Assembly: GCA_964057225.1 (NCBI GenBank)
Contig: OZ059898.1
Span: 806,001 to 870,000, forward strand
Direction: 5' to 3'
Length of the DNA: 64,000 nt
From: Auanema rhodensis
Taxonomy: Eukaryota > Animalia > Nematoda
In this document: positions 32,885 to 64,000 of the stretch, in pieces
How the letters are laid out: each line of letters opens with the position of its first letter
Position numbering within the stretch: the stretch's first letter is position 1
Notes under the pieces: generated by a model
Database searches by the model: none
Seen by the model: the letters and a program-made list of their open reading frames with translations, nothing else
Told to the model about the DNA's origin: nothing
Translations under genes and position numbers: made by a program

Positions 32885-32998
32885 ATTGTCTTCTTAAGAG
32901 AAAAGCGATGTTCTATCATGAGTTATATATATGTGTTTTTTTGTGTTTTTTATTTTTTTGAATAAATAATTGTTGAACATCTCGGGACGCGAAGTTTC

Positions 32999-33010
32999 GA
33001 AGGGAGGGGA
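32999..33010 (+). promoter_or_regulatory. Polypurine tract, copy 2
   Basis: GAAGGGAGGGGA before the 3' LTR. Confidence 0.93.
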
Positions 33011-33362
33011 TGTTAAGAAATGAGAATATTGTTAAATATATTGATTATAGAATATTATGAATGATATTTATAACAACAAAATATCATTGAAAATAACATT
33101 TAGAAACGATTGGATTCAATTACGATGAAAGAAAAAGAAGATAAAATTGGTCTTCAAAAGAATGCTCCCTTGACAATGAAACTACCGTAATCATCTTTTG
33201 CAACCAAATTCATAATTTTGGCCTAAAAATTGTATTGTTGTTTTTTTGAAATAAATTAAAGGCAGTTTGGGATTCTGTTTTCATTTTTTGTTTGATTATT
33301 TCTATTTTTTTTTATAATAAATCGTTTGCTTATTTGATCTTTTTGTTTCCTCTAATATAACT
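33011..33362 (+). repeat. Gypsy copy 2, 3' LTR
   Basis: TGTTAAG...ATAACT followed by TATA and satellite. Confidence 0.97.
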
Positions 33363-39300: not shown

Positions 39301-42300
39301 ATGCGGATTTTTAAGCTGCGTCGATCTGTGTTATCAGATTTGCGCTAGCTTAAAAATGCACCGAGATATCAACTGATATAAGTTCACACTTATATCCTCG
39401 ATTTTCACCCTGAAGAATTAATTTTTTCGTTGAATAACATTGTCCATCGTCTTTGCCTTGAAAAAAGGAATCTAAAAACATCTACTTTTCGCCAAATTAT
39501 TTTGAAATATTTCGAAAAAATTTTTGTCAAAATGTTTTTGGAAGCAATGTTGAGTGTACATGGAAACTCAACATACACTAATGCATCATTTTTCAAACGA
39601 TCATAACTAATTTTTGTATTAAGCGTTTCTCAATGTAGTATAGTGCATTCGATGCGGATTTTTAAGCTGCGTCGATCTGTGTTATCAGATTTGCGCTAGC
39701 TTAAAAATGCACCGAGATATCAACTGATATAAGTTCACACTTATATCCTCGATTTTCACCCTGAAGAATTAATTTTTTCGTTGAATAACATTGTCCATCG
39801 TCTTTGCCTTGAAAAAAGGAATCTAAAAACATCTTCTTTTTGCTAAATTATTTTGAAATTTTTCGAAAAAATTTTTGTCAAAATGTTCTTGGAAGCAATG
39901 TTGAGTGTACATGGAAACTCAACATACACTAATGCATCATTTTTCAAACGATCATAACTAATTTTTGTATTAAGCGTTTCTCAATGTAGTATAGTGCATT
40001 CGATGCGGATTTTTAAGCTGCGTCGATCTGTGTTATCAGATTTGCGCTAGCTTAAAAATGCACCGAGATATCAACTGATATAAGTTCACACTTATATCCT
40101 CGATTTTCACCCTGAAGAATTAATTTTTTCGTTGAATAACATTGTCCATCGTCTTTGCCTTGAAAAAAGGAATCTAAAAACATCTACTTTTCGCCAAATT
40201 ATTTCGAAATATTTCGAAAAAATTTTTGTCAAAATGTTTTTGGAAGCAATGTTGAGTGTACATGGAAACTCAACATACACTAATGCATCATTTTTCAAAC
40301 GATCATAACTAATTTTTGTATTAAGCGTTTCTCAATGTAGTATAGTGCATTCGATGCGGATTTTTAAGCTGCGTCGATCTGTGTTATCAGATTTGCGCTA
40401 GCTTAAAAATGCACCGAGATATCAACTGATATAAGTTCACACTTATATCCTCGATTTTCACCCTGAAGAATTAATTTTTTCGTTGAATAACATTGTCCAT
40501 CGTCTTTGCCTTGAGAAAAGGAATCTAAAAACATCTACTTTTTGCTAAATTATTTTGAAATTTTTCGAAAAAATTTTTGTCAAAATGTTTTTGGAAGCAA
40601 TGTTGAGTGTACATGAAAACTCAACATACACTAATGCATCATTTTTCAAACGATCATAACTAATTTTTGTATTAAGCGTTTCTCAATGTAGTATAGTGCA
40701 TTCGATGCGGATTTTTAAGCTGCGTCGATCTGTGTTATCAGATTTGCGCTAGCTTAAAAATGCACCGAGATATCAACTGATATAAGTTCACACTTATATC
40801 CTCGATTTTCACCCTGAAGAATTAATTTTTTCGTTGAATAACATATCCATCGTCTTTGCCTTGAAAAAAGGAATCTAAAAACATCTACTTTTCGCCAAAT
40901 TATTTTGAAATTTTTCGAAAAAATTTTTGTCAAAATGTTTTTGGAAGCAATGTTGAGTGTACATGGAAACTCAACATACACTAATGCATCATTTTTCAAA
41001 CGATCATAACTAATTTTTGTATTAAGCGTTTCTCAATGTAGTATAGTGCATTCGATGCGGATTTTTAAGCTGCGTCGATCTGTGTTATCAGATTTGCGCT
41101 AGCTTAAAAATGCACCGAGATATCAACTGATATAAGTTCACACTTATATCCTCGATTTTCACCCTGAAGAATTAATTTTTTCGTTGAATAACATTGTCCA
41201 TCGTCTTTGCCTTGAAAAAAGGAATCTAAAAACATCTACTTTTTGCTAAATTATTTTGAAATTTTTCGAAAAAATTTTTGTCAAAATGTTTTTGGAAGCA
41301 ATGTTGAGTGTACATGGAAACTCAACATACACTAATGCATCATTTTTCAAACGATCATAACTAATTTTTGTACTAAGCGTTTCTCAATGTAGTATAGTGC
41401 ATTCGATGCGGATTTTTAAGCTGCGTCGATCTGTGTTATCAGATTTGCGCTAGCTTAAAAATGCACCGAGATATCAACTGATATAAGTTCACACTTATAT
41501 CCTCGATTTTCACCCTGAAGAATTAATTTTTTTGTTGAATAACATTGTCCATCGTCTTTGCCTTTAAAAAAGGAATCTAAAAACATCTACTTTTTGCTAA
41601 ATTATCTTGAAATTTTTCGAAAAAATTTTTGTCAAAATGTTTTTGGAAGCAATGTTGAGTGTACATAGAAACTCAACATACACTAATGCATCATTTTTCA
41701 AACGATCATAACTAATTTTTGTATTAAGCGTTTCTCAATGTAGTATAGTGCATTCGATGCGGATTTTTAAGCTGTGTCGATCTGTGTTATCAGATTTGCG
41801 CTAGCTTAAAAATGCACCGAGATATCAACTGATATAAGTTCACACTTATATCCTCGATTTTCACCCTGAAGAATTAATTTTTTCGTTGAATAACATTGTC
41901 CATCGTCTTTGCCTTGAAAAAAGGAATCTAAAAACATCTACTTTTTGCTAAATTATCTTGAAATTTTTCGAAAAAATTTTTGTCAAAATGTTTTTGGAAG
42001 CAATGTTGAGTGTACATGGAAACTCAACATACACTAATGCATCATTTTTCAAACGATCATAACTAATTTTTGTATTAAGCGTTTCTCAATGTCGTATAGT
42101 GCATTCGATGCGGATTTTTAAGCTGCGTCGATCTGTGTTATCAGATTTGCGCTAGCTTAAAAATGCACCGAGATATCAACTGATATAAGTTCACACTTAT
42201 ATCCTCGATTTTCACCCTGAAGAATTAATTTTTTCGTTGAATAACATTGTCCATCGTCTTTGCCTTGAAAAAAGGAATCTAAAAACATCTACTTTTTGCT

Positions 42301-44125
42301 AAATTATTTCGAAATTTTTCGAAAAAATTTTTGTCAAAATGTTTTTGGAAGCAATGTTGAGTGTACAAGGAAACTCAACATACACTAATGCATCATTTTT
42401 CAAACGATCATAACTAATTTTTGTATTAAGCGTTTCTCAATGTAGTATAGTGCATTCGATGCGGATTTTTAAGCTGCGTCGATCTGTGTTATCAGATTTG
42501 CGCTAGCTTAAAAATGCACCGAGATATCAACTGATATAAGTTCACACTTATATCCTCGATTTTCACCCTGAAGAATTAATTTTTTCGTTGAATAACATTG
42601 TCCATCGTCTTTGCCTTGAAAAAAGGAATCTAAAAACATCTACTTTTTGCCAAATTATTTTGAAATTTTTCGAAAAAATTTTTGTCAAAATGTTTTTGGA
42701 AGCAATGTTGAGTGTACATGGAAACTCAACATACACTAATGCATCATTTTTCAAACGATCATAACTAATTTTTGTATTAAGCGTTTCTCAATGTAGTATA
42801 GTGCATTCGATGCGGATTTTTAAGCTGCGTCGATCTGTGTTATCAGATTTGCGCTAGCTTAAAAATGCACCGAGATATCAACTGATATAAGTTCACACTT
42901 ATATCCTCGATTTTCACCCTGAAGAATTAATTTTTTCGTTGAATTACATTGTCCATCGTCTTTGCCTTGAAAAAAGGAATCTAAAAACATCTACTTTTTG
43001 CTAAATTATTTTGAAATTTTTCGAAAAAATTTTTGTCAAAATGTTTTTGGAAGCAATGTTGAGTGTACATGGAAACTCAACATACACTAATGCATCATTT
43101 TTCAAACGATCATAACTAATTTTTGTATTAAGCGTTTCTCAATGTAGTATAGTGCATTCGATGCGGATTTTTAAGCTGCGTCGATCTGTGTTATCAGATT
43201 TGCGCTAGCTTAAAAATGCACCGAGATATCAACTGATATAAGTTCACACTTATATCCTCGATTTTCACCCTGAAGAATTAATTTTTTCGTTGAATAACAT
43301 TGTCCATCGTCTTTGCCTTGAAAAAAGAAATCTAAAAACATCTACTTTTCGCCAAATTATTTTGAAATATTTCGAAAAAATTTTTGTCAAAATGTTTTTG
43401 GAAGCAATGTTGAGTGTACATGGAAACTCAACATACACTAATGCATCATTTTTCAAACGATCATAACTAATTTTTGTATTAAGCGTTTCTCAATGTAGTA
43501 TAGTGCATTCGATGCGGATTTTTAAGCTGCGTCGATCTGTGTTATCAGATTTGCGCTAGCTCAAAAATGCACCGAGATATCAACTGATATAAGTTCACAC
43601 TTATATCCTCGATTTTCACCCTGAAGAATTAATTTTTTCGTTGAATAACATTGTCCATCGTCTTTGCCTTGAAAAAAGGAATCTAAAAACATCTTCTTTT
43701 TGCTAAATTATTTTGAAATTTTTCGAAAAAATTTTTGTCAAAATGTTCTTGGAAGCAATGTTGAGTGTACATGGAAACTCAACATACACTAATGCATCAT
43801 TTTTCAAACGATCATAACTAATTTTTGTATTAAGCGTTTCTCAATGTAGTATAGTGCATTCGATGCGGATTTTTAAGCTGCGTCGATCTGTGTTATCAGA
43901 TTTGCGCTAGCTTAAAAATGCACCGAGATATCAACTGATATAAGTTCACACTTATATCCTCGATTTTCACCCTGAAGAATTAATTTTTTCGTTGAATAAC
44001 ATTGTCCATCGTCTTTGCCTTGAAAAAAGGAATCTAAAAACATCTACTTTTCGCCAAATTATTTCGAAATATTTCGAAAAAATTTTTGTCAAAATGTTTT
44101 TGGAAGCAATGTTGAGTGTACATGG
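33363..44125. repeat. 351-bp satellite array, block 3 (about 31.5 monomers, four 275-bp variants)
   Basis: Same monomer. Deletion junctions at 34005, 34631, 35959 and 36234. Confidence 0.99.
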
Positions 44126-44443
44126 TATCTCGAAATTAAAACGAAATATAATGAAAATGATTTATTTATAAGAAATATTTTATGAATCACGATATATATT
44201 ATTAAATATGCGACTACGCGCTATGAGCCAACTATGTGAACTGAAAGATAACTTTATAGTCCTCGTTACGTCAATTTCACGCGCTTATGACGTGACGCGT
44301 ATACAACCGGTTTTCTCAAACCAAATGAGAATAAATGATTAATGAATAATTTCTTTTCAGGATGATTTTAATATTTAATGAATTCTCACTTTTTTAATAG
44401 TTTCTCCGTTACTTTCATTAAATTTCGTATAATATACGAAACA
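44126..44443 (-). repeat. BEL 3' LTR (TGTTTCG...CGAGATA on the - strand)
   Basis: Direct repeat of 51505-51822. Confidence 0.97.
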
Positions 44444-44510
44444 TTCCAGCCCGAATCGGGTTTTTTAATATGTTTCACGAAAGAATTCATTTTATTTCAT
44501 TTAAAAATGT

Positions 44511-44963
44511 TTATTTTCGTTTGGTACATGGGCAGATAATAAAATTATACTGCTTCAAATTACAAAATTTACAAATTTTTGCTTTTGTGCAATCTCCTTT
44601 ATGTCTGTTAAGACAGAGTAAGCATAACTTCATAGAGACTGCTTTGGTAAACTTAGAAAGTTTAGATGGATGTTGGGAACATTTTTCGGTGTTGTGTTCT
44701 TTTTTACAGAGTTTGCAGTATGACTTCGGTTTATATGTTATAGTTGATGTACCATCTTTCTTTTCTGGTTGTTTACTACTTATCTCTCGTTTTTCAGAGT
44801 AAATATCATTCAATTTCTTCAGTGCTTCACACATAGTAACCACGTGTTTCTCCAGAAAGGATATTCTTTCTATGAGATTGTCGGTGGTTGCTTGGTTTTC
44901 TTCAATTCCTTCCTCCAGAAGTAGTTCTTCATAATCATTCATGATTTCGTTCTGTTCCTTCAT
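44511..44963 (-). CDS. BEL accessory ORF3, 150 aa: acidic, probably coiled-coil N-terminus plus triple Cys/His knuckle
   Basis: ATG-started ORF between pol and the 3' LTR with CKLCKKEHNTEKC, CLLCLNRHKGDC and CKFCNLKQYNFIICPC. Confidence 0.8.
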   Translation of the reverse strand: MKEQNEIMNDYEELLLEEGIEENQATTDNLIERISFLEKHVVTMCEALKKLNDIYSEKREISSKQPEKKDGTSTITYKPKSYCKLCKKEHNTEKCSQHPSKLSKFTKAVSMKLCLLCLNRHKGDCTKAKICKFCNLKQYNFIICPCTKRK

Positions 44964-44993
44964 GAGAAATGAATTTTTCTGTTAGATTCTTTT

Positions 44994-45053
44994 CTTTATA
45001 TACTATTTCTGGTTGCGTGACTTTACGTGACGTTCACGTAACGTTATGACGTG
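44994..45053 (-). promoter_or_regulatory. Putative internal promoter for ORF3
   Basis: On the - strand CACGTCATAA..CGTGAA..ACGTAA..TATAAAG, the same motifs in the same order as in the LTR (44252-44294). The TATA box ends 30 nt before the ATG. Confidence 0.6.
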
Positions 45054-45214
45054 TCACGAATCATCCGCCGCAAAAAAAACGACCGATTAACTCTCTTCAC
45101 ATAATTTGAATTACTTTTTATTTAAAATTAATATATATATATATATTTTTTTTTTTTATTCTAGAAACTACACTATGCATGTACAAAATTTAATTTAATT
45201 CAATGTTGTTATAG

Positions 45215-48200
45215 CTAAAAGAACATAGTGTAGTCAATTTTTTCGATATTCCGAAGTCTATTTTTCCATAATTCTGGATTATTCTCTTTTATATTTTTTG
45301 GTTCATTACTTTTTTCATGATTTTGCAATGATTCACTGTTTATTCTATGATTTTCTTCGTTATTTGGTGTATTTTCTGATATTTCCAGAGGGATGAGATG
45401 ATTAATAGATCTGAGAAATCGATTCCCTTCAGAATTTCTAATTTTGACGGTTCTGATCTCTCCATCTTGCGAATATATCAATTCTTCAATAATTGCAAGT
45501 GGCCATTTGTGTCTTTTTACGTTATTTTCAATGCATAAAACAATTTCACCAACTTTGGGATTTGTTTTATTACAGTTTTTGTTGATAGCACTCTTGTTAG
45601 ATAATGCTCTTAGTTCTTCAAGGTAAGTTAAAGACCATTCTCTCCAAAATTCCGAAATAGTTCTATTGCAAATACTCATCCAGTCTTTTATTTCGTTAAT
45701 TTGAGATAAATTTGTTTTCTTTGCATTATCCGAGAATTCGCAAATGAGGTTTTCTGGATGGTAGTACTCTAGACTTTTAGGAGTTATTATTTTGTCAAAA
45801 TCGTCATGTATGTACGATATAGGTCTCGAATTTATTATATTTTCAATTTCTGTTAAAATTGTACTTAATTCATTGAAATAAACTGTTCTTGTTCCAAGTG
45901 TTTTTATTAAGTACTTTTTTGTTACTCCAATCAATCTTTCATAAAATCCTCCTTTCCATGGTGAATAAGGAGTTATTTTTTGCCAGTTTACATGCTTTTT
46001 TTCAATGAAAGTTTCGAGAATTTTATCAGTTTTTATAAACTGACTGCCGTTATCTGATATTATTTTTGTTGGTACTCGTTTTCGAGCAAAAAATTTTCTC
46101 AGATTTAGTGTTAATTCTTTACTGGAGCAATCATTGGCTAAATCCAAATATACTGCTCGTGTACACAGGCAAGTAATTAACATAATCCAAACCTTCTTGT
46201 CATAATTACTATTTGTTTTTACTAATAACGGACCGGCGTAATCAATACCTATATTTTCGAAAGGTTTATATATTAGGACTCTTTCTTTTGGTAATTGAGG
46301 ATAATTTGGGTATTTATATGGCCTATTATTTAATTTTTTACATTTTAAACATTTTGAAATTACTGTATTTATGCATGTTTTAAGTTTTATGATGAAAAAT
46401 TCTCTTCTTACTATTGCCATCATGGTTTCTCGCGAACTATGAAGCGATGTCTCATGAATGTAAGTAAGAATGAGTTTAGTGAATGTTTTTTTTCCAAAAA
46501 GAAGAATTGGATACTGTTTGTTACTATTTTCTGAGTTGCCTAATCGGCCTCGCACTCTTAATATTCCAGAATCATCTGTAATTATATCCAATTTCTTGTA
46601 TTTTTCTTTTTTAAGCAAAATGCTGTTTTGGTTTTGATGACATTTTATTAGAAGTTGTTGAATCATTTTGTTTTTTGTCAACGTATCTTTTTCATTAAAA
46701 TTCTCAAGCAGATTTTGACTTGTTTTTCCGATATTTTTCTGCATTTTAGTGATGAAAATTAGAACTTGGCGAATTATGTTAATGAACTTTGAATACGATG
46801 AAAAAGTTTGTGCCAAGAAATCTAAATCTTGATTCTCAGCTGGATTCATTTCAGATTTTAACAACAAAGTCACTATTTTTAGTTGTGGTTCATCACAATA
46901 CTTTTCTATAACTTCTTTCAATGTTTTTATGTGCAAATTTCGTTCTTTTTCTGCTTTATACCATTGAGGACCTTCGATCCATTGCATATATGTTTCATCG
47001 GGTTTTTCTAAACCTCTCGTAGGTAAATCGGCAGGATTAAACTTTGTATTCACATAAAAAAATTCAATTTTTCGGTTTCCTTGTTCAATTTCGGTTATTA
47101 ATTCTGTTATTTTGTTCAATCTGTTCCGTATATATATTTTTTTCGTTGGATTCTTATGTAACCAACATAGAACAACTTGTGAATCAGTGAAAATTTTAAT
47201 ATTTTTGATTTTTACGTTTATTTCTTTGATATTTTCTTTTAACATTTTCATTCCGAAAAGAACAGCAGTTAGTTCTTTCATTGGTATGGTTCCTTCAACC
47301 ATTGTCGATGATTTAGAGCATAAAAAATCTATTTTTTCAATTTTTCCATGAATATTTATACTCATCACATATGCGACGGCCGCTATGACATCTTTAGACG
47401 CGTCAGTGAATAATAAAAATTCATATTTTTGAGATGTATCGCTTGTTTCATCGATAATTGCTCTTTTAATTTCGATTTTTTCGTTTTCGATCTTTTTATA
47501 TAAGGTTTTCCATACTGATTGTTGTTTTTCTGGTATTAGTTCGTCCCATCCTATTTTGGAATCCCAAATTTCTTTCAAAAATAACCTTAGTTTTAATGTT
47601 AGAGGTTGTGTTATACCGAGAGGGTCGAATATTGAGTTTATATAGCTCAAAATTCCTCTTTTGGTGATAGACTTCTCTTCCCATTTGGGTATTTTTATTA
47701 ATAAAACATCTTTTTCACCGTTGTAATGCATTCCTAGTATTTTGAAGCTTGTTTCTTTAATCTGGTCTTTGATTGGGATCATGTCTTTTTGAATTACATC
47801 ATTAGTATAAAATTCTCTAACGTTCATTCCTATTTTTGAAAATAAATTTTTTACTTCCTCATAAAATTTGAAAATTTGATCTTTATTTTCAATTTTCAGC
47901 ATTATGTTGTCCACATAAATGTTTCTTAATATATTTTCTGAGATTTCACTTTTTTCCGTTTTTAAAAAATAAATTATGCTTGCTGCTAATAGGAATGGTG
48001 AACTGTTCACTCCAAAAGGTATTCTTGTAAATCGTAAGTTTAGAATGTTACTTTTCTGCGTTCCTTTGTGAATGTCTTTCACCCATAAAATTCTTGTTAA
48101 ATCTCTATGATTTTCGTCTAATTCTATTTGGTGGAACGCTTTCTCTATGTCCCCTATTAAGAAGTTTCTACTCATTCTGAGTCTTATTAGCATGCCTGCA

Positions 48201-49342
48201 AGACTTGGTATGATGCCTTCACCTTGATACAGTATGTCATTGAGAGATTTTTCATTTTTCTTTTTACTTGATGCATTTAGAACAATTCTGAGCTTTGTAG
48301 TCAGGCTCGACAGTTTTAAAACATAATGATGTGGTATATAATAAGTGAAAAAAGGATGATTTTGCTCTGGAGCAATTTCTAGAATTCCAGTTTTCATTTG
48401 TTCCATCATTGTTTCGTTATATTTCATCAAAATATCGGTTTTATCTTTCATTGTGTTCAGTATGCCATTCAAACATCCGATACTTTTGCCATAATTATCG
48501 TTAATTGATTGAACATCCGGTCTTATTGGAAATTTAACTTTAATTCGATCATTTACATATTGTACATTATCGTAAAAATGTTTCCAAGCCATTTTATCTT
48601 CATATTTACGTATTTCTTCTTTAGTTGCTTTTTTATTATCATCATTTAAACTAATTCCGTTTAAAAAACAGCTTATATCTTCGTTTTGAACGGATTCTTT
48701 TGAATTACTATCATTACAGTCACTTTGAGCAATAATAGGATGTATTATAGTTGGTATTATAATCAAATCATTACGTATATTAATAGATTTGAAAGTTTTT
48801 GGAACAAAATCGAAGAAATTGTCCATTCCTATTAAAATATCTGGTTCTACAAGACCTTTTTCAAATAATAATGTATTACTTTTTAGTTTATATGCTTTGA
48901 TTTCTTTAATATCCTCTTCATTTAATATGGGCATATTAACATATTTTGTAATTTGATCAATACTCATTAGTTTTACTGCTTTTTTGACTTCGGGAATATC
49001 CCACATAACTTCTCTAGATGATATGTTTTTTATATTGTTATTTATGCTTGAAATACTTAAAGATTTTTCGTTTAAAATTTTTAAATTCAACAGTTTCGCT
49101 GTTTTTTCTTTTATAAATGATTGATGAGAGCAAGTATCGAATAATATTACTAGATTTTTATGATAAGTTTTGAAAAATGATATGAAAAATGTGTTATTTC
49201 TATTTTTTTCTGTGTTATTTATATTTTCTGATAAAAGATTAGTTCTTATTATTCCTTTTCTATTACATTTTTCATTATTCGAAAATTTTGCCCTAATGGT
49301 TCTTGATTGCCACCTGTTAGTTGAAGTTTCTGGCCTCTCTCT
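45215..49342 (-). CDS. pol: BEL pol (PR-RT-RH-IN), -1 frame relative to gag
   Basis: The frame is open from 49342, beyond the called TTG start at 49090. The extension holds the protease motif VILFDTCSHQSFI (~49110-49150) and overlaps the end of gag by 94 nt. Confidence 0.92.
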   Translation of the reverse strand, partial: RERPETSTNRWQSRTIRAKFSNNEKCNRKGIIRTNLLSENINNTEKNRNNTFFISFFKTYHKNLVILFDTCSHQSFIKEKTAKLLNLKILNEKSLSISSINNNIKNISSREVMWDIPEVKKAVKLMSIDQITKYVNMPILNEEDIKEIKAYKLKSNTLLFEKGLVEPDILIGMDNFFDFVPKTFKSINIRNDLIIIPTIIHPIIAQSDCNDSNSKESVQNEDISCFLNGISLNDDNKKATKEEIRKYEDKMAWKHFYDNVQYVNDRIKVKFPIRPDVQSINDNYGKSIGCLNGILNTMKDKTDILMKYNETMMEQMKTGILEIAPEQNHPFFTYYIPHHYVLKLSSLTTKLRIVLNASSKKKNEKSLNDILYQGEGIIPSLAGMLIRLRMSRNFLIGDIEKAFHQIELDENHRDLTRILWVKDIHKGTQKSNILNLRFTRIPFGVNSSPFLLAASIIYFLKTEKSEISENILRNIYVDNIMLKIENKDQIFKFYEEVKNLFSKIGMNVREFYTNDVIQKDMIPIKDQIKETSFKILGMHYNGEKDVLLIKIPKWEEKSITKRGILSYINSIFDPLGITQPLTLKLRLFLKEIWDSKIGWDELIPEKQQSVWKTLYKKIENEKIEIKRAIIDETSDTSQKYEFLLFTDASKDVIAAVAYVMSINIHGKIEKIDFLCSKSSTMVEGTIPMKELTAVLFGMKMLKENIKEINVKIKNIKIFTDSQVVLCWLHKNPTKKIYIRNRLNKITELITEIEQGNRKIEFFYVNTKFNPADLPTRGLEKPDETYMQWIEGPQWYKAEKERNLHIKTLKEVIEKYCDEPQLKIVTLLLKSEMNPAENQDLDFLAQTFSSYSKFINIIRQVLIFITKMQKNIGKTSQNLLENFNEKDTLTKNKMIQQLLIKCHQNQNSILLKKEKYKKLDIITDDSGILRVRGRLGNSENSNKQYPILLFGKKTFTKLILTYIHETSLHSSRETMMAIVRREFFIIKLKTCINTVISKCLKCKKLNNRPYKYPNYPQLPKERVLIYKPFENIGIDYAGPLLVKTNSNYDKKVWIMLITCLCTRAVYLDLANDCSSKELTLNLRKFFARKRVPTKIISDNGSQFIKTDKILETFIEKKHVNWQKITPYSPWKGGFYERLIGVTKKYLIKTLGTRTVYFNELSTILTEIENIINSRPISYIHDDFDKIITPKSLEYYHPENLICEFSDNAKKTNLSQINEIKDWMSICNRTISEFWREWSLTYLEELRALSNKSAINKNCNKTNPKVGEIVLCIENNVKRHKWPLAIIEELIYSQDGEIRTVKIRNSEGNRFLRSINHLIPLEISENTPNNEENHRINSESLQNHEKSNEPKNIKENNPELWKNRLRNIEKIDYTMFF

Positions 49343-50457
49343 TCATTAGCATAATATTTTCTTTCATTTTGGTTTGGGGTACCTTCATTAGCATATGCGT
49401 TTCTGTTGTTTTTGAGTGTAGTTTGCTCATTAGCATATTGGTTTTTTATGCAAATGCTTTGATGATGCCGTCCATTGCATATTTCGCATGGTTTTTCTTT
49501 ACATTCGAATGATGAATGTTTTTTGCTAAAACAAATCCAGCATACTTTGTTTTGCATAATAATATTTCGCTTTTCGCTAATTGGTTTCAATTTTCTACAG
49601 TATTTCGTATCATGATTATCCATTCTACAGTATATGCATGTTTTTTCAATTTGTTTTGTAAGGCTATAATTATTTTCGTTCATTCTATTATAATTTTTTA
49701 TTGTTTTCGGATTTCTTTCTTTATTTGAATTTGTTAAAAAATTAATTGTTGATCTATGCTCATATTTTTCACTTTTGCTGTTTTTTGTTGCTGCAATTCC
49801 TGCTTCTATTTTGATTTCTATGCATTTTAGCACGTCTTCTATGTTCATTCTCCTTTTTTCTGTTATTTCTATTTCGGATATTTTTGTGTTGATCTCTATA
49901 TCAAATTTGCTTTTTATTATTTCTATTATTTCATCATTATCAACGTTTTCGTACTCTTCTAATGCTGATATTATTGACTTAATTTTATAAAAATTTTCTC
50001 TTGCATGTATTGGGTTGTTATATGATTTTCTTACGTTACTAAGCTCCATTTTTAAATCTTTTTTAATTTCGTAAGGTCTATCAAACGTATCTTTTAACAA
50101 TTTCAGAGCTTTTGCATAATTGTTCGCCTCTAGGCTGATGTGTTCCAACAGTTGTGATGGGAAGCCGGTAAGTGATGTTTTGAGATAGTATAATTTTTCT
50201 AATTTTGTTATTTTTTTATTATTATGTATGAGCATTTTGAACATGTTGTAAAATTCTTTAAATTTTTTGATTTCTCCATCAAATTTTTGTAATTCCATTT
50301 TTGGTTTGAATCCTTCATTTTTCATGATCTTGTGTTTGTTTTTTCCATAAGATATATTTTCTTCATCTGATTCTGTATTATATTCTTCATTACTTTCGTA
50401 CTTTTCTGTTCTTTTGTGTATTTCACATTTTTTTATGTGTTTTTCCAATTTCTTCAT
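49249..50457 (-). CDS. gag: BEL gag core, 402 aa from the first available ATG
   Basis: Capsid-like region KFDGEIKKFKEFYNMF...EKLYYLKTSL and three knuckles CIYC..H..C, CWIC..H..C, CEIC..HH..C. Confidence 0.92.
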   Translation of the reverse strand: MKKLEKHIKKCEIHKRTEKYESNEEYNTESDEENISYGKNKHKIMKNEGFKPKMELQKFDGEIKKFKEFYNMFKMLIHNNKKITKLEKLYYLKTSLTGFPSQLLEHISLEANNYAKALKLLKDTFDRPYEIKKDLKMELSNVRKSYNNPIHARENFYKIKSIISALEEYENVDNDEIIEIIKSKFDIEINTKISEIEITEKRRMNIEDVLKCIEIKIEAGIAATKNSKSEKYEHRSTINFLTNSNKERNPKTIKNYNRMNENNYSLTKQIEKTCIYCRMDNHDTKYCRKLKPISEKRNIIMQNKVCWICFSKKHSSFECKEKPCEICNGRHHQSICIKNQYANEQTTLKNNRNAYANEGTPNQNERKYYANEERGQKLQLTGGNQEPLGQNFRIMKNVIEKE

Positions 50458-50818
50458 TATATTTCGTTTTTAATTCATTTAAATTGTTTGTCAATTGTTT
50501 TATTTTTGATAGTAAATCGTTTTCTTTATATTGAACTGTTTGTTTTGCTCTTGGGGATATTATTAAATTAGGTGTACCTTTTTTGATTGGGGTTTGGTAC
50601 ACATATTTTGCATGTTTGCTTTTAAATTGGTTAATTTTGAAGTTGGTAGGAGTGAATCTTTGTGATAACTTTTCGTATTCCGATTCTAAATCTTCTTCTG
50701 AAGAAAATTGAGTTTCCTCTTCATTATCTGAGGGTTCCTCTTCGATTTCGATTAAATCTTTTTGATTTATTGCTTCTAGGAAGTCTTTTTCATTTAATTT
50801 GAAATTTCTGATGCATAA
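50423..50818 (-). pseudogene. Probable 5' part of gag, start lost and frameshifted by one base
   Basis: 131 sense codons plus stop (LCIRNFKLNEKDFLEAINQKDLIEIEEEPSDNEEE...). It is one base out of frame with the gag core and is cut at the rearrangement junction 50820/50821. Confidence 0.7.
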
Positions 50819-50820
50819 TT

Positions 50821-50959
50821 AAAAAATTTTCTCAGATTTAGTGTTAATTTATACCATTGAGGACCTTCGATCCATTGCATATATGTTTCATCGGGTTTTT
50901 CTAAACCTCTCGTAGGTAAATCGGCAGGATTAAACTTTGTATTCACATAAAAAAATTCA
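50821..50959 (-). repeat. Same-orientation copies of two internal pol fragments
   Basis: 50821-50849 = 46088-46116 (integrase) and 50848-50959 = 46955-47066 (end of RNase H). Confidence 0.95.
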
Positions 50960-50968
50960 GAATTAACT

Positions 50969-51158
50969 TTGATTACGCCGGTCCGTTATTAGTAAAAACA
51001 AATAGTAATTATGACAAGAAGGTTTGGATTATGTTAATTACTTGCCTGTGTACACGAGCAGTATATTTGGATTTAGCCAATGATTGCTCCAGTAAAGAAT
51101 TAACACTAAATCTGAGAAAATTTTTTGCTCGAAAACGAGTACCAACAAAAATAATATC
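50969..51158 (+). repeat. Inverted 190-bp copy of the integrase core
   Basis: Reverse complement of 46056-46245. It translates on + as DYAGPLLV...RKRVPTKIIS. Confidence 0.96.
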
Positions 51159-51198
51159 CACGCGGGCGACCCGGGTTCGATTCCCGGCCGATGCACCA
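51158..51198 (+). tRNA. 3' half of tRNA-Gly(GCC) including CCA (fragment, extended PBS, inner copy)
   Basis: CCACGCGGGCGACCCGGGTTCGATTCCCGGCCGATGCACCA: partial anticodon loop, T arm with GGTTCGATTCC, acceptor strand and CCA. The 5' half is absent. Confidence 0.9.
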
Positions 51199-51205
51199 CT
51201 TTTTA

Positions 51206-51401
51206 TATCTCGAAATTAAAACGAAATATAATGAAAATGATTTATTTATAAGAAATATTTTATGAATCACGATATATATTATTAAATATGCGACTACGCG
51301 CTATGAGCCAACTATGTGAACTGAAAGATAACTTTATAGTCCTCGTTACGTCAATTTCACGCGCTTATGACGTGACGCGTATACAACCGGTTTTCTCAAA
51401 C
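51206..51401 (-). repeat. Partial internal BEL LTR (3' 196 bp)
   Basis: Matches 44126-44321. Confidence 0.95.
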
Positions 51402-51456
51402 ACACTAAATCTGAGAAAATTTTTTGCTCGAAAACGAGTACCAACAAAAATAATAT

Positions 51457-51497
51457 CCACGCGGGCGACCCGGGTTCGATTCCCGGCCGATGCACCA
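51457..51497 (+). tRNA. 3' half of tRNA-Gly(GCC) including CCA (fragment, extended PBS next to the 5' LTR)
   Basis: Same 41-mer. On the element strand it reads TGGTGCATCGGCCGGGAA..., 7 nt after the LTR end. Confidence 0.9.
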
Positions 51498-51504
51498 CTT
51501 TTTA

Positions 51505-51822
51505 TATCTCGAAATTAAAACGAAATATAATGAAAATGATTTATTTATAAGAAATATTTTATGAATCACGATATATATTATTAAATATGCGACTACGCGC
51601 TATGAGCCAACTATGTGAACTGAAAGATAACTTTATAGTCCTCGTTACGTCAATTTCACGCGCTTATGACGTGACGCGTATACAACCGGTTTTCTCAAAC
51701 CAAATGAGAATAAATGATTAATGAATAATTTCTTTTCAGGATGATTTTAATATTTAATGAATTCTCACTTTTTTAATAGTTTCTCCGTTACTTTCATTAA
51801 ATTTCGTATAATATACGAAACA
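51505..51822 (-). repeat. BEL 5' LTR
   Basis: 318 bp, identical by eye to 44126-44443. Confidence 0.97.
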
Positions 51823-54800
51823 CATGGAAACTCAACATACACTAATGCATCATTTTTCAAACGATCATAACTAATTTTTGTATTAAGCGTTTCTCAATGT
51901 AGTATAGTGCATTCGATGCGGATTTTTAAGCTGCTTCGATCTGTGTTATCAGATTTGCGCTAGCTTAAAAATGCACCGAGATATCAACTGATATAAGTTC
52001 ACACTTATATCCTCGATTTTCACCCTGAAGAATTAATTTTTTCGTTGAATAACATTGTCCATCGTCTTTGCCTTGAAAAAAGGAATCTAAAAACATCTAC
52101 TTTTCGCCAAATTATTTTGAAATTTTTCGAAAAAATTTTTGTCAAAATGTTTTTGGAAGCAATGTTGAGTGTACATGGAAACTCAACATACACTAATGCA
52201 TCATTTTTCAAACGATCATAACTAATTTTTGTATTAAGCGTTTCTCAATGTAGTATAGTGCATTCGATGCGGATTTTTAAGCTGCTTCGATCTGTGTTAT
52301 CAGATTTGCGCTAGCTTAAAAATGCACCGAGATATCAACTGATATAAGTTCACACTTATATCCTCGATTTTCACCCTGAAGAATTAATTTTTTCGTTGAA
52401 TAACATTGTCCATCGTCTTTGCCTTGAAAAAAGGAATCTAAAAACATCTACTTTTCGCCAAATTATTTTGAAATTTTTCGAAAAAATTTTTGTCAAAATG
52501 TTTTTGGAAGCAATGTTGAGTGTACATGGAAACTCAACATACACTAATGCATCATTTTTCAAACGATCATAACTAATTTTTGTATTAAGCGTTTCTCAAT
52601 GTAGTATAGTGCATTCGATGCGGATTTTTAAGCTGCGTCGATCTGTGTTATCAGATTTGCGCTAGCTTAAAAATGCACCGAGATATCAACTGATATAAGT
52701 TCACACATATATCCTCGATTTTCACCCTGAAGAATTAATTTTTTCGTTGAATAACATTGTCCATCGTCTTTGCCTTGAAAAAAGGAATCTAAAAACATCT
52801 ACTTTTTGCTAAATTATTTTGAAATTTTTCGAAAAAATTTTTGTCAAAATGTTTTTGGAAGCAATGTTGAGTGTACATGGAAACTCAACATACACTAATG
52901 CATCATTTTTCAAACGATCATAACTAATTTTTGTATTAAGCGTTTCTCAATGTAGTATAGTGCATTCGATGCGGATTTTTAAGCTGCGTCGATCTGTGTT
53001 ATCAGATTTGCGCTAGCTTAAAAATGCACCGAGATATCAACTGATATAAGTTCACACTTATATCCTCGATTTTCACCCTGAAGAATTAATTTTTTCGTTG
53101 AATAACATTGTCCATCGTCTTTGCCTTGAAAAAAGGAATCTAAAAACATCTACTTTTCGCCAAATTATTTTGAAATTTTTCGAAAAAATTTTTGTCAAAA
53201 TGTTTTTGGAAGCAATGTTGAGTGTACATGGAAACTCAACATACACTAATGCATCATTTTTCAAACGATCATAACTAATTTTTGTATTAAGCGTTTCTCA
53301 ATGTAGTATAGTGCATTCGATGCGGATTTTTAAGCTGCGTCGATCTGTGTTATCAGATTTGCGCTAGCTTAAAAATGCACCGAGATATCAACTGATATAA
53401 GTTCACACATATATCCTCGATTTTCACCCTGAAGAATTAATTTTTTCGTTGAATAACATTGTCCATCGTCTTTGCCTTGAAAAAAGGAATCTAAAAACAT
53501 CTACTTTTTGCTAAATTATTTTGAAATTTTTCGAAAAAATTTTTGTCAAAATGTTTTTGGAAGCAATGTTGAGTGTACATGGAAACTCAACATACACTAA
53601 TGCATCATTTTTCAAACGATCATAACTAATTTTTGTATTAAGCGTTTCTCAATGTAGTATAGTGCATTCGATGCGGATTTTTAAGCTGCGTCGATCTGTG
53701 TTATCAGATTTGCGCTAGCTTAAAAATGCACCGAGATATCAACTGATATAAGTTCACACTTATATCCTCGATTTTCACCCAGAAGAATTAATTTTTTCGT
53801 TGAATAACATTGTCCATCGTCTTTGCCTTGAAAAAAGGAATCTAAAAACATCTACTTTTTGCTAAATTATTTTGAAATTTTTCGAAAAAATTTTTGTCAA
53901 AATGTTTTTGGAAGCAATGTTGAGTGTACATGGAAACTCAACATACACTAATGCATCATTTTTCAAACGATCATAACTAATTTTTGTATTAAGCGTTTCT
54001 CAATGTAGTATAGTGCATTCGATGCGGATTTTTAAGCTGCGTCGATCTGTGTTATCAGATTTGCGCTAGCTTAAAAATGCACCGAGATATCAACTGATAT
54101 AAGTTCACACTTATATCCTCGATTTTCACCCTGAAGAATTAATTTTTTCGTTGAATAACATTGTCCATCGTCTTTGCCTTGAAAAATAGAATCTAAAAAC
54201 ATCTACTTTTTGCTAAATTATTTTGAAATTTTTCGAAAAAATTTTTGTCAAAATGTTTTTGGAAGCAATGTTGAGTGTACATGGAAACTCAACATACACT
54301 AATGCATCATTTTTCAAACGATCATAACTAATTTTTGTATTAAGCGTTTCTCAATGTAGTATAGTGCATTCGATGCGGATTTTTAAGCTGCGTCGATCTG
54401 TGTTATCAGATTTGCGCTAGCTTAAAAATGCACCGAGATATCAACTGATATAAGTTCACACTTATATCCTCGATTTTCACCCTGAAGAATTAATTTTTTC
54501 GTTGAATAACATTGTCCATCGTCTTTGCCTTGAAAAAAGGAATCTAAAAACATCTACTTTTCGCCAAATTATTTTGAAATTTTTCGAAAAAATTTTTGTC
54601 AAAATGTTTTTGGAAGCAATGTTGAGTGTACATGGAAACTCAACATACACTAATGCATCATTTTTCAAACGATCATAACTAATTTTTGTATTAAGCGTTT
54701 CTCAATGTAGTATAGTGCATTCGATGCGGATTTTTAAGCTGCGTCGATCTGTGTTATCAGATTTGCGCTAGCTTAAAAATGCACCGAGATATCAACTGAT

Positions 54801-57800
54801 ATAAGTTCACACATATATCCTCGATTTTCACCCTGAAGAATTAATTTTTTCGTTGAATAACATTGTCCATCGTCTTTGCCTTGAAAAAAGGAATCTAAAA
54901 ACATCTACTTTTTGCTAAATTATTTTGAAATTTTTCGAAAAAATTTTTGTCAAAATGTTTTTGGAAGCAATGTTGAGTGTACATGGAAACTCAACATACA
55001 CTAATGCATCATTTTTCAAACGATCATAACTAATTTTTGTATTAAGCGTTTCTCAATGTAGTATAGTGCATTCGATGCGGATTTTTAAGCTGCGTCGATC
55101 TGTGTTATCAGATTTGCGCTAGCTTAAAAATGCACCGAGATATCAACTGATATAAGTTCACACTTATATCCTCGATTTTCACCCAGAAGAATTAATTTTT
55201 TCGTTGAATAACATTGTCCATCGTCTTTGCCTTGAAAAAAGGAATCTAAAAACATCTACTTTTTGCTAAATTATTTTGAAATTTTTCGAAAAAATTTTTG
55301 TCAAAATGTTTTTGGAAGCAATGTTGAGTGTACATGGAAACTCAACATACACTAATGCATCATTTTTCAAACGATCATAACTAATTTTTGTATTAAGCGT
55401 TTCTCAATGTAGTATAGTGCATTCGATGCGGATTTTTAAGCTGCGTCGATCTGTGTTATCAGATTTGCGCTAGCTTAAAAATGCACCGAGATATCAACTG
55501 ATATAAGTTCACACTTATATCCTCGATTTTCACCCTGAAGAATTAATTTTTTCGTTGAATAACATTGTCCATCGTCTTTGCCTTGAAAAATAGAATCTAA
55601 AAACATCTACTTTTTGCTAAATTATTTTGAAATTTTTCGAAAAAATTTTTGTCAAAATGTTTTTGGAAGCAATGTTGAGTGTACATGGAAACTCAACATA
55701 CACTAATGCATCATTTTTCAAACGATCATAACTAATTTTTGTATTAAGCGTTTCTCAATGTAGTATAGTGCATTCGATGCGGATTTTTAAGCTGCGTCGA
55801 TCTGTGTTATCAGATTTGCGCTAGCTTAAAAATGCACCGAGATATCAACTGATATAAGTTCACACTTATATCCTCGATTTTCACCCTGAAGAATTAATTT
55901 TTTCGTTGAATAACATTGTCCATCGTCTTTGCCTTGAAAAAAGGAATCTAAAAACATCTACTTTTCGCCAAATTATTTTGAAATTTTTCGAAAAAATTTT
56001 TGTCAAAATGTTTTTGGAAGCAATGTTGAGTGTACATGGAAACTCAACATACACTAATGCATCATTTTTCAAACGATCATAACTAATTTTTGTATTAAGC
56101 GTTTCTCAATGTAGTATAGTGCATTCGATGCGGATTTTTAAGCTGCGTCGATCTGTGTTATCAGATTTGCGCTAGCTTAAAAATGCACCGAGATATCAAC
56201 TGATATAAGTTCACACATATATCCTCGATTTTCACCCTGAAGAATTAATTTTTTCGTTGAATAACATTGTCCATCGTCTTTGCCTTGAAAAAAGGAATCT
56301 AAAAACATCTACTTTTTGCTAAATTATTTTGAAATTTTTCGAAAAAATTTTTGTCAAAATGTTTTTGGAAGCAATGTTGAGTGTACATGGAAACTCAACA
56401 TACACTAATGCATCATTTTTCAAACGATCATAACTAATTTTTGTATTAAGCGTTTCTCAATGTAGTATAGTGCATTCGATGCGGATTTTTAAGCTGCGTC
56501 GATCTGTGTTATCAGATTTGCGCTAGCTTAAAAATGCACCGAGATATCAACTGATATAAGTTCACACTTATATCCTCGATTTTCACCCTGAAGAATTAAT
56601 TTTTTCGTTGAATAACATTGTCCATCGTCTTTGCCTTGAAAAAAGGAATCTAAAAACATCTACTTTTTGCTAAATTATTTTGAAATTTTTCGAAAAAATT
56701 TTTGTCAAAATGTTTTTGGAAGCAATGTTGAGTGTACATGGAAACTCAACATACACTAATGCATCATTTTTCAAACGATCATAACTAATTTTTGTATTAA
56801 GCGTTTCTCAATGTAGTATAGTGCATTCGATGCGGATTTTTAAGCTGCGTCGATCTGTGTTATCAGATTTGCGCTAGCTTAAAAATGCACCGAGATATCA
56901 ACTGATATAAGTTCACACTTATATCCTCGATTTTCACCCTGAAGAATTAATTTTTTCGTTGAATAACATTGTCCATCGTCTTTGCCTTGAAAAAAGGAAT
57001 CTAAAAACATCTACTTTTCGCCAAATTATTTTGAAATTTTTCGAAAAAATTTTTGTCAAAATGTTTTTGGAAGCAATGTTGAGTGTACATGGAAACTCAA
57101 CATACACTAATGCATCATTTTTCAAACGATCATAACTAATTTTTGTATTAAGCGTTTCTCAATGTAGTATAGTGCATTCGATGCGGATTTTTAAGCTGCG
57201 TCGATCTGTGTTATCAGATTTGCGCTAGCTTAAAAATGCACCGAGATATCAACTGATATAAGTTCACACATATATCCTCGATTTTCACCCTGAAGAATTA
57301 ACTTTTTCGTTGAATAACATTGTCCATCGTCTTTGCCTTGAAAAAAGGAATCTAAAAACATCTACTTTTTGCTAAATTATTTTGAAATTTTTCGAAAAAA
57401 TTTTTGTCAAAATGTTTTTGGAAGCAATGTTGAGTGTACATGGAAACTCAACATACACTAATGCATCATTTTTCAAACGATCATAACTAATTTTTGTATT
57501 AAGCGTTTCTCAATGTAGTATAGTGCATTCGATGCGGATTTTTAAGCTGCGTCGATCTGTGTTATCAGATTTGCGCTAGCTTAAAAATGCACCGAGATAT
57601 CAACTGATATAAGTTCACACTTATATCCTCGATTTTCACCCTGAAGAATTAATTTTTTCGTTGAATAACATTGTCCATCGTCTTTGCCTTGAAAAAAGGA
57701 ATCTAAAAACATCTACTTTTTGCTAAATTATTTTGAAATTTTTCGAAAAAATTTTTGTCAAAATGTTTTTGGAAGCAATGTTGAGTGTACATGGAAACTC

Positions 57801-60800
57801 AACATACACTAATGCATCATTTTTCAAACGATCATAACTAATTTTTGTATTAAGCGTTTCTCAATGTAGTATAGTGCATTCGATGCGGATTTTTAAGCTG
57901 CGTCGATCTGTGTTATCAGATTTGCGCTAGCTTAAAAATGCACCGAGATATCAACTGATATAAGTTCACACTTATATCCTCGATTTTCACCCTGAAGAAT
58001 TAATTTTTTCGTTGAATAACATTGTCCATCGTCTTTGCCTTGAAAAAAGGAATCTAAAAACATCTACTTTTTGCTAAATTATTTTGAAATTTTTCGAAAA
58101 AATTTTTGTCAAAATGTTTTTGGAAGCAATGTTGAGTGTACATGGAAACTCAACATACACTAATGCATCATTTTTCAAACGATCATAACTAATTTTTGTA
58201 TTAAGCGTTTCTCAATGTAGTATAGTGCATTCGATGCGGATTTTTAAGCTGCGTCGATCTGTGTTATCAGATTTGCGCTAGCTTAAAAATGCACCGAGAT
58301 ATCAACTGATATAAGTTCACACTTATATCCTCGATTTTCACCCTGAAGAATTAATTTTTTCGTTGAATAACATTGTCCATCGTCTTTGCCTTGAAAAAAG
58401 GAATCTAAAAACATCTACTTTTTGCTAAATTATTTTGAAATTTTTCGAAAAAATTTTTGTCAAAATGTTTTTGGAAGCAATGTTGAGTGTACATGGAAAC
58501 TCAACATACACTAATGCATCATTTTTCAAACGATCATAACTAATTTTTGTATTAAGCGTTTCTCAATGTAGTATAGTGCATTCGATGCGGATTTTTAAGC
58601 TGCGTCGATCTGTGTTATCAGATTTGCGCTAGCTTAAAAATGCACCGAGATATCAACTGATATAAGTTCACACTTATATCCTCGATTTTCACCCTGAAGA
58701 ATTAATTTTTTCGTTGAATAACATTGTCCATCGTCTTTGCCTTGAAAAAAGGAATCTAAAAACATCTACTTTTTGCTAAATTATCTTGAAATTTTTCGAA
58801 AAAATTTTTGTCAAAATGTTTTTGGAAGCAATGTTGAGTGTACATGGAAACTCAACATACACTAATGCATCATTTTTCAAACGATCATAACTAATTTTTG
58901 TATTAAGCGTTTCTCAATGTAGTATAGTGCATTCGATGCGGATTTTTAAGCTGCGTCGATCTGTGTTATCAGATTTGCGCTAGCTTAAAAATGCACCGAG
59001 ATATCAACTGATATAAGTTCACACATATATCCTCGATTTTCACCCTGAAGAATTAATTTTTTCGTTGAATAACATTGTCCATCGTCTTTGCCTTGAAAAA
59101 AGGAATCTAAAAACATCTACTTTTTGCTAAATTATTTTGAAATTTTTCGAAAAAATTTTTGTCAAAATGTTTTTGGAAGCAATGTTGAGTGTACATGGAA
59201 ACTCAACATACACTAATGCATCATTTTTCAAACGATCATAACTAATTTTTGTATTAAGCGTTTCTCAATGTAGTATAGTGCATTCGATGCGGATTTTTAA
59301 GCTGCGTCGATCTGTGTTATCAGATTTGCGCTAGCTTAAAAATGCACCGAGATATCAACTGATATAAGTTCACACTTATATCCTCGATTTTCACCCTGAA
59401 GAATTAATTTTTTCGTTGAATAACATTGTCCATCGTCTTTGCCTTGAAAAAAGGAATCTAAAAACGTCTACTTTTTGCTAAATTATTTTGAAATTTTTCG
59501 AAAAAATTTTTGTCAAAATGTTTTTGGAAGCAATGTTGAGTGTACATGGAAACTCAACATACACTAATGCATCATTTTTCAAACGATCATAACTAATTTT
59601 TGTATTAAGCGTTTCTCAATGTAGTATAGTGCATTCGATGCGGATTTTTAAGCTGCGTCGATCTGTGTTATCAGATTTGCGCTAGCTTAAAAATGCACCG
59701 AGATATCAACTGATATAAGTTCACACTTATATCCTCGATTTTCACCCTGAAGAATTAATTTTTTCGTTGAATAACATTGTCCATCGTCTTTGCCTTGAAA
59801 AAAGGAATCTAAAAACATCTACTTTTTGCTAAATTATTTTGAAATTTTTCGAAAAAATTTTTGTCAAAATGTTTTTGGAAGCAATGTTGAGTGTACATGG
59901 AAACTCAACATACACTAATGCATCATTTTTCAAACGATCATAACTAATTTTTGTATTAAGCGTTTCTCAATGTAGTATAGTGCATTCGATGCGAATTTTT
60001 AAGCTGCGTCGATCTGTGTTATCAGATTTGCGCTAGCTTAAAAATGCACCGAGATATCAACTGATATAAGTTCACACTTATATCCTCGATTTTCACCCTG
60101 AAGAATTAATTTTTTCGTTGAATAACATTGTCCATCGTCTTTGCCTTGAAAAAAGGAATCTAAAAACATCTACTTTTCGCCAAATTATTTTGAAATTTTT
60201 CGAAAAAATTTTTGTCAAAATGTTTTTGGAAGCAATGTTGAGTGTACATGGAAACTCAACATACACTAATGCATCATTTTTCAAACGATCATAACTAATT
60301 TTTGTATTAAGCGTTTCTCAATGTAGTATAGTGCATTCGATGCGGATTTTTAAGCTGCGTCGATCTGTGTTATCAGATTTGCGCTAGCTTAAAAATGCAC
60401 CGAGATATCAACTGATATAAGTTCACACATATATCCTCGATTTTCACCCTGAAGAATTAATTTTTTCGTTGAATAACATTGTCCATCGTCTTTGCCTTGA
60501 AAAAAGGAATCTAAAGACATCTACTTTTTGCTAAATTATTTTGAAATTTTTCGAAAAAATTTTTGTCAAAATGTTTTTGGAAGCAATGTTGAGTGTACAT
60601 GGAAACTCAACATACACTAATGCATCATTTTTCAAACGATCATAACTAATTTTTGTATTAAGCGTTTCTCAATGTAGTATAGTGCATTCGATGCGGATTT
60701 TTAAGCTGCGTCGATCTGTGTTATCAGATTTGCGCTAGCTTAAAAATGCACCGAGATATCAACTGATATAAGTTCACACTTATATCCTCGATTTTCACCC

Positions 60801-63800: not shown

Positions 63801-64000
63801 ATAACTAATTTTTGTATTAAGCGTTTCTCAATGTAGTATAGTGCATTCGATGCGGATTTTTAAGCTGCGTCGATCTGTGTTATCAGATTTGCGCTAGCTT
63901 AAAAATGCACCGAGATATCAACTGATATAAGTTCACACTTATATCCTCGATTTTCACCCTGAAGAATTAATTTTTTCGTTGAATAACATTGTCCATCGTC
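51823..64000. repeat. 351-bp satellite array, block 4 (about 34.7 monomers, very homogeneous)
   Basis: Period 351 with no deletion variants. Diagnostic SNPs show 702- and 1404-bp periodicity. Confidence 0.99.

Follow-up and report, generated by a model that had tools for sequence, protein, structure and literature searches.

A primer tRNA-Gly(GCC) copied beyond the primer-binding site in an integrated BEL/Pao retrotransposon of Auanema rhodensis, a probable product of deferred second-strand transfer

In retroviruses, synthesis of plus-strand strong-stop DNA is stopped by the modified nucleosides m1A58 (1-methyladenosine at position 58) and m5Um54 of the primer tRNA, and read-through past m1A58 leaves a 3' end that lacks complementarity to the minus strand and is unable to pair with it after transfer (Fukuda et al., NAR 2021, PMC8599865). 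[quoted passage not shown] The present analysis concerns a stretch of 64,000 nt from the nematode Auanema rhodensis (assembly GCA_964057225.1, contig OZ059898.1, positions 806,001 to 870,000 of the forward strand; hereafter the window, in whose numbering all coordinates are given), and within it a BEL/Pao long terminal repeat (LTR) retrotransposon, at 44126-51822 on the minus strand, whose 5' LTR is followed by a 41-nt complement of the 3' half of tRNA-Gly(GCC). The locus is probably a single BEL/Pao insertion that arose through faulty reverse transcription, in which the plus-strand strong-stop DNA over-copied its primer tRNA, was extended by low-homology template switches and was then integrated. 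An original prediction, made from the letters of the stretch, had seen in it a genomic record of priming by a tRNA fragment. The kind of event is already known as deferred second-strand transfer, while the element group and the host are new and the path is more convoluted than in the described cases.

The complement of tRNA-Gly(GCC), running from C35 to A76, occurs twice on the minus strand, as an inner copy at 51158-51198 and an outer copy at 51457-51497, the first 12 nt of the latter being the PBS proper, and the plus strand of the window reads in the tRNA sense. On the sense strand of the element each copy is preceded by a 7-nt spacer (51199-51205 for the inner copy, reading TAAAAAG; 51498-51504, between the 5' LTR and the PBS). 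The original prediction had placed the 41-nt PBS under 51158-51497; the 41-mer is present there, but the interval spans two identical 41-mers belonging to a 299-bp tandem duplication. A 26-nt core of the tRNA copy has 2 occurrences in the window against 0 expected by chance. The tRNA was named by scanning a metagenome collection with the window's own 38 nt (51158-51195, CCA left out), which found an exact match in five short metagenome contigs, each of which, according to ARAGORN, bears a 71-nt tRNA-Gly(GCC) gene with the 38 nt as its 3' end. Aligned to these genes, the window is identical at 38/38 positions, from the second anticodon base, C35, through the discriminator A73. The base preceding C35 is T in the window versus G34 in the tRNA genes, with the sequence upstream of C35 unrelated to them, and past the discriminator the genes read ATT, ATC or ACT followed by a T-run where the window reads CCA. 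Since the T loop is identical to that of the genes, A58 was copied as A. The original prediction was thus right that the 3' half of tRNA-Gly(GCC) had been copied through CCA, that A58 had been passed and read as A, and that the copy ends within the anticodon at about position 35.

Other parts of that prediction fared less well. It had treated CCA as a sign of a mature tRNA, which is no independent mark because the complement of CCA belongs to every PBS; the informative part of the 41-mer is instead the 29 nt past the 12-nt PBS, which continue in perfect tRNA register. It had also pointed to a B box next to the LTR, and GGTTCGATTCC is indeed present, twice and antisense to the element, without an A box or a tRNA gene and with no apparent sign of any function. 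A genomic tRNA pseudogene carrying CCA had been considered as well, together with a match ending at about 18 nt. The match runs for 38 nt, beyond about 18; neither a 5' half nor an A box accompanies the 41-mer, and ARAGORN found no tRNA gene in the window. Rfam runs did not name the tRNA because the tRNA model was masked by clan competition, so that only the T arm, acceptor and CCA were reported, by tmRNA-type models; it was the metagenome genes that gave the name. A literature search with the last 22 nt of the tRNA copy returned no matches. As a separate observation, two of the metagenome contigs each bear a tandem pair of tRNA-Gly(GCC) genes separated by a few hundred bases, L003 (280-350 and 643-713) and L006 (589-659 and 1426-1496), the copy at 1426-1496 of L006 showing two differences, both in the 5' half.

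How far the tRNA copy exceeds a normal PBS was judged by comparison with related elements. By word search, the closest relatives in pol were Logan contig P0002 (52% identical) and P0003 of Auanema sp. JU1783 (57%), and many further pol matches come from nematodes. In the nucleotide sequences of these two relatives, L001 and L002, the PBS reads TGGTGCATCGGC, complementary to the final 12 nt of tRNA-Gly(GCC), and both diverge immediately thereafter; L001 moreover has the identical spacer TAAAAAG ahead of its PBS. Because both stop at 12 nt, the PBS of the clade is taken to be 12 nt, and the copy in the window would thus carry an overrun of 29 extra nt. The norm of about 18 copied nucleotides, on which the original prediction relied, is a retroviral figure and does not describe these two relatives. 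Measurement of the PBS in other copies, proposed in the original prediction, could be made in part: the relatives have 12 nt and not 41, whereas for the family itself an exact look-up with gag found no copies and a gag word search gave only a 27% identical clam protein. Three remoter BEL/Pao relatives, L008-L010, have no tRNA-Gly(GCC) PBS and use other primers, which makes them uninformative for the clade.

Two further observations were made on these related sequences. The contigs of the relatives have identical ends (in L001, 1-30 equals 7311-7340; in L002, 1-93 equals 7054-7146), and each contig is probably a single element whose two LTRs were collapsed in assembly. In addition, two BEL/Pao pol proteins, P0042 and P0048, are labelled as coming from bacterial metagenome-assembled genomes (Bacteroidota and Ignavibacteria) and are most likely animal DNA binned with bacteria.

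Beyond the tRNA copy, the 5' region of the element is a mosaic of displaced pieces, all on the minus strand. Read along the sense strand, the 5' LTR (51505-51822) is followed by the spacer, the outer 41-mer, a 56-nt inverted copy of integrase 46056-46111 (51402-51457), the last 196 of the 318 nt of the LTR (51206-51401), the spacer again and the inner 41-mer. After this second 41-mer come a 190-nt inverted copy of integrase 46056-46245 (50969-51158), a 9-nt filler (50960-50968), a 112-nt copy of pol 46955-47066 in the same orientation as its source (50848-50959) and a 29-nt copy, likewise direct, of integrase 46088-46116 (50821-50849), past which the sequence is unique within the window and runs into gag. 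The sources of the longer pieces, both on the minus strand, are the integrase core, or rve part, of pol at 46056-46245, from which both inverted copies derive, and the segment between the RNase H-like part and the integrase at 46955-47066. The jump to antisense integrase with a 1-nt overlap, as originally predicted, is borne out, since 50969-51158 is the exact reverse complement of 46056-46245 and overlaps the tRNA copy by 1 nt (51158). The 112-nt and 29-nt pieces have 2 nt in common, and of the filler 8/9 nt equal 51096-51103 of the inverted integrase copy, a match so short that it may be due to chance.

The tandem duplication consists of two 299-bp units (51103-51401 = 51402-51700, together 51103-51700 on the minus strand) with a 3-nt microhomology, AAC, at the boundary, each unit being composed of the 56-nt integrase piece, the 196-nt LTR piece, the spacer and the 41-mer; the partial LTR thus belongs to the duplication, and the 56-nt piece is part of a second copy of the tRNA-integrase junction. 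All displaced pieces match their sources at 100% identity, and the two LTRs likewise match each other, so that the whole is of recent and single origin. Non-homologous template switching after the tRNA copy, also claimed in the original prediction, agrees with the inverted and direct displaced pieces, while the 299-bp duplication, the 112- and 29-nt sense pieces and the 12-nt PBS of the relatives had been missed. Two more specific readings of the mosaic were considered and rejected. The 196-nt partial LTR is not an R-U5 segment (the repeat and 5' unique regions of the LTR) gained when the growing strand jumped to the 3' end of minus-strand strong-stop DNA, because the motif TATAAAG lies within it and promoter sequence is therefore included. 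The idea that the 190-nt piece ends at a central polypurine tract was likewise discarded, as the sequence upstream of 46245 is not convincingly purine-rich and is dissimilar to the candidate tract at the 3' end. It was also observed that three breakpoints of the mosaic fall near integrase 46111-46118, namely the duplication boundary, the start of the 29-nt piece (50821-50849, matching 51098-51126) and the 8-nt match of the filler (50960-50968, matching 51096-51103); this short interval may be a switching hot spot or may mark a break in the template.

The element that carries this mosaic can be classed as a BEL/Pao LTR retrotransposon, with two LTRs in direct orientation. Its 3' LTR (44126-44443, minus strand) and 5' LTR (51505-51822, minus strand) are each 318 nt long and 100% identical, and their sense strand starts with TGT. 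The pentamer CATGG stands on both sides, at 44121-44125 and 51823-51827, whereas the intact satellite monomer into which the element was inserted has CATGG once at this place, as judged from 118 matches to the joined flanks. Given CATGG on both sides and the identical LTRs, the whole structure was inserted by integrase with a 5-bp target-site duplication. A short purine-rich run next to 44443, read from the sequence at 44444-44466 (minus strand), is a candidate polypurine tract. The pol open reading frame (ORF; 45215-49090, minus strand) is open over 1291 codons and shows in a Pfam scan the order protease-like DUF1758, RVT_1, Peptidase_A17 (Pao), integrase zinc finger, rve and DUF5641; neither stops nor frameshifts were noticed in it, and 99% of pol is spanned by a single alignment to P0002.

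The gag gene (DUF1759; 49249-50820, minus strand) is in a poorer state. Its conserved part is open over 402 codons and aligns with residues 292-637 of the 646-codon gag of L002 and with the corresponding part of L001, while the upstream part is open over 131 codons in a different frame, has no start codon and gives a weak but correctly ordered alignment to the N-terminal gag of the relatives (E 0.17 and 0.015). In the relatives, gag begins about 45-50 nt past the PBS and is about 650 codons long. The damage to gag is thus counted as one frame change and one probable 5' truncation, and the leader and first part of gag appear to be missing from the copy in the window.

Two further features of the element were observed. 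A Cys-rich ORF of 150 codons lies between pol and the 3' LTR (44511-44963, minus strand), for which there was no above-threshold Pfam match and which is not significantly similar to the ORF found at the corresponding position in L002. An inverted match of 18 nt, exact and by a rough estimate too long for chance, links 50453-50470, around the gag ATG, with the U5 end of the LTR (44138-44155, 51218-51235 and 51517-51534); it may represent pairing of U5 with the start codon in the RNA leader, and an RNA fold of the 5' region does pair U5 with the gag start, with nothing further gained from it.

Two findings place the locus beside deferred second-strand transfer, namely an in-register tRNA complement of 41 nt versus 12 nt in the relatives, and a junction, with a 1-nt overlap, between the tRNA end and a part of the element that is not adjacent to it. 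The sequence of events that we consider probable would start from an element with a normal PBS of 12 nt, like that of its two nearest relatives. During plus-strand strong-stop synthesis, the reverse transcriptase would have copied the tRNA still joined to the minus strand past the PBS and past A58, 29 nt further, to C35; since the extra 29 nt stand in perfect register with the PBS, the template would have been the primer tRNA itself, attached to the minus strand, from which the final step of plus-strand strong-stop synthesis is templated. The correctly copied A58 fits a primer lacking m1A58, if the host tRNA-Gly(GCC) normally has this modification. With a tRNA-derived 3' tail unable to pair with the minus strand at the PBS, second-strand transfer would have failed or been deferred, and the tail would have been lengthened by switches at 1-3 nt of homology. 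The first of these templates would have been the plus-sense integrase region, most simply on a second packaged RNA or a fragment of it, and the later ones minus-strand DNA, until the strand was re-joined within gag, the leader and the beginning of gag being lost. By pairing at the PBS of 12 nt, the minus strand would nevertheless have been able to complete the 5' LTR, giving an integration-competent molecule with an unpaired bubble. The bubble would then have been resolved by replication or repair in favour of the plus-strand version, which fits the observation that tRNA-templated PBS changes in retroviruses are inherited 50:50 (PMC7472051). The 299-bp duplication would most simply be later than the tRNA-integrase junction, because both units hold the identical junction, and would have arisen by one backward slip at the 3-nt homology, during copying or later in the host.

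Several points weigh against this account. The normal PBS of 12 nt is drawn from relatives just 52-57% identical in pol and not from copies of the same family, and the tRNA match was made to metagenome tRNA-Gly(GCC) genes rather than to those of the host itself. The mosaic and duplication are as read from the assembly, and the loss of the leader and gag start is deduced from weak protein similarity, with the E values given above. Both the order of the switches and the templates assigned to them are reconstructed, and some of the junctions could have been made by host repair. Finally, in Ty1 and Ty3 both strands reportedly take their PBS from the RNA and not via copying of the primer tRNA (PMC7472051), and BEL/Pao elements may likewise not normally copy it.

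Among the alternatives, the one that survives best, although it remains unlikely, accepts that reverse transcriptase overran the tRNA but places the mosaic and the 299-bp duplication after integration, as the work of host microhomology-mediated template switching on gapped or flapped DNA. The pieces come from within about 5 kb, in both orientations and with homologies of 1-3 nt, which is the usual signature of replication-based switching, and nothing in the sequence links the duplication to reverse transcription; the LTR boundary within it lies upstream of TATAAAG and so is not the R-U5 end of strong-stop DNA. Templated inserts of the polymerase-theta type are usually shorter, however, than the pieces of 112 and 190 nt. 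Complete LTR ends and a clean target duplication, moreover, point to orderly linear DNA at the time of integration, and reverse transcriptases are themselves known to make low-homology switches of this kind (PMC12657518).

Priming by a 3' half of tRNA-Gly(GCC), as the original prediction proposed, is improbable. Under this explanation the primer would have started at C35, and the reverse transcriptase would have run off its 5' end and jumped end to end. It has in its favour that the copy ends in the anticodon loop at C35, that the junction shows the 1-nt overlap expected of run-off followed by end-to-end jumping, and that the identical tRNA-integrase junction is found twice, which two fixed physical ends could in principle yield. 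A start at C35, however, requires a cut after G34. The usual specificity of the RNase A-type enzymes, by which tRNA halves are produced, is for cleavage after pyrimidines. The end in the anticodon loop, which the original prediction had linked to the cutting of tRNA halves, is not diagnostic either, as read-through of the whole tRNA in HIV-1 ends almost anywhere along the 7-54 nt past the PBS (PMC12657518). The repeated junction is more simply explained as duplication of a finished strand, and the more elaborate version, in which reverse transcriptase ran off the same end twice onto the same acceptor end, is a degree more doubtful again. There is also no recurrence, the relatives having a plain 12-nt PBS and the two copies in the window being one duplicated junction, and a single event cannot establish a preference.

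Far less probable is that the structure is an assembly artefact, or that an unrelated tRNA retro-pseudogene or short interspersed element landed beside the LTR. Large perfect duplications in the window (9637 bp) do make repeat collapse or expansion conceivable for the 299-bp duplication, but inverted copies from 5 kb away with single-base overlaps are atypical of assembler error, the extra 29 nt in perfect register with the PBS are unlike an independent insertion, the 5' half, A box and tRNA gene are lacking, as noted above, and a clean target duplication of 5 bp flanks the entire element. That the 41-nt stretch is a normal inherited trait of the family is scarcely credible, for although the comparison covers relatives and not copies of the same family, the two nearest relatives end at 12 nt, and the stretch abuts an inverted piece of integrase from the element itself, 100% identical to its source, so that it cannot be a functional leader and must be very recent.

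If over-copying of the primer is the correct explanation, the locus resembles the HIV-1 proviruses (PMC12657518) in several respects. Next to an intact LTR and PBS, with no gap, comes further complement of the primer tRNA, which here extends 29 nt beyond the PBS; the insert stands at a junction with an internal position and goes along with a 5' deletion, which here is probable; position 58 is copied correctly, as in most of the HIV-1 cases; and the product is integrated and defective. It differs from them in that the element is a BEL/Pao retrotransposon primed by tRNA-Gly(GCC) and not Lys3, with a PBS of 12 rather than 18 nt, and in that the first landing was on a plus-sense template, giving an inverted piece, which is followed by three displaced or filler pieces and a tandem duplication. 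In addition, the insertion is found in an assembled and presumably germline genome, unlike the HIV-1 proviruses. Judged against the work on m1A58 (PMC8599865), the copy has the form predicted for failure of the stop, a plus strand with a non-complementary, tRNA-derived 3' end, but such products are not expected there to be integrated, as this one was. With a PBS of 12 nt, the normal stop in this BEL/Pao clade may lie elsewhere than at the retroviral m1A58. Compared with Ty1 and Ty3, the BEL/Pao copy holds tRNA-templated DNA past the PBS and is therefore retrovirus-like in this event.

Comparison can also be made with elements linked to parts of tRNAs in other ways. Copia is reportedly primed by a 5' fragment of the initiator tRNA-Met, and a 3' fragment of tRNA-Pro is said to have been proposed as a primer of human T-cell leukaemia virus type 1. 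The locus shares with such tRNA-fragment priming a piece of tRNA ending in or near the anticodon arm and tied to the reverse transcription of an LTR element. In copia, however, use of the fragment is a family trait, with a PBS matching an internal part of the tRNA, whereas the relatives of the present element have an ordinary 3'-end PBS. Fragments from the 3' ends of tRNAs (3'-tRFs) that match PBSs have been reviewed (PMC7472051). Helenus and TRIMp3 contain a tRNA-like part inside their LTRs, thought to be an RNA polymerase III promoter (Kojima 2024, PMC10886601), and resemble the present case in linking tRNA-derived sequence with a B box to an LTR element. In the window, the tRNA part instead lies outside the LTR, at the PBS, comprises the 3' half only and is antisense to the element, and the 3' LTR (44126-44443) has no tRNA part.

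The surroundings of the element are an AT-rich array (about 31% G+C) of a 351-bp satellite, at 1-9758, 17413-25700, 33355-44125 and 51823-64000, interrupted by three large insertions, of which the BEL/Pao element with the over-copied tRNA (44126-51822) is the third. In the window, 119 copies of the satellite were counted, most of them 97-100% identical, and shorter spacings of 275 bp that recur regularly suggest a higher-order repeat. The other two insertions, at 9759-17412 and 25701-33354 on the plus strand, are copies of a Ty3/gypsy-type LTR element with LTRs of about 354 nt and a single ORF of 2109 codons (RVT_1, RNase H and integrase). Both lie within a perfectly identical block of 9637 bp (8812-18448 = 24754-34390), which was doubled either by segmental duplication of the array or during assembly.

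The insertion offers a clean and datable natural case, with all LTRs and displaced pieces 100% identical, in which a plus strand that over-copied its primer tRNA could nevertheless enter a genome by integration; in work on HIV-1, by contrast, such products are regarded as dead ends or are encountered only as defective proviruses. It extends the aberration from HIV-1 to the BEL/Pao elements of invertebrates, and indicates that, in this event at any rate, the primer tRNA itself served as template for a BEL/Pao reverse transcriptase, as it does in retroviruses. Were the improbable reading of priming by a tRNA half true, the locus would be a genomic trace of tRNA-half priming in a BEL/Pao element. 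More broadly, a survey of such overruns across genomes could reveal from the sequence by itself, for organisms with unmapped tRNA modifications, the points on primer tRNAs at which reverse transcriptases halt.

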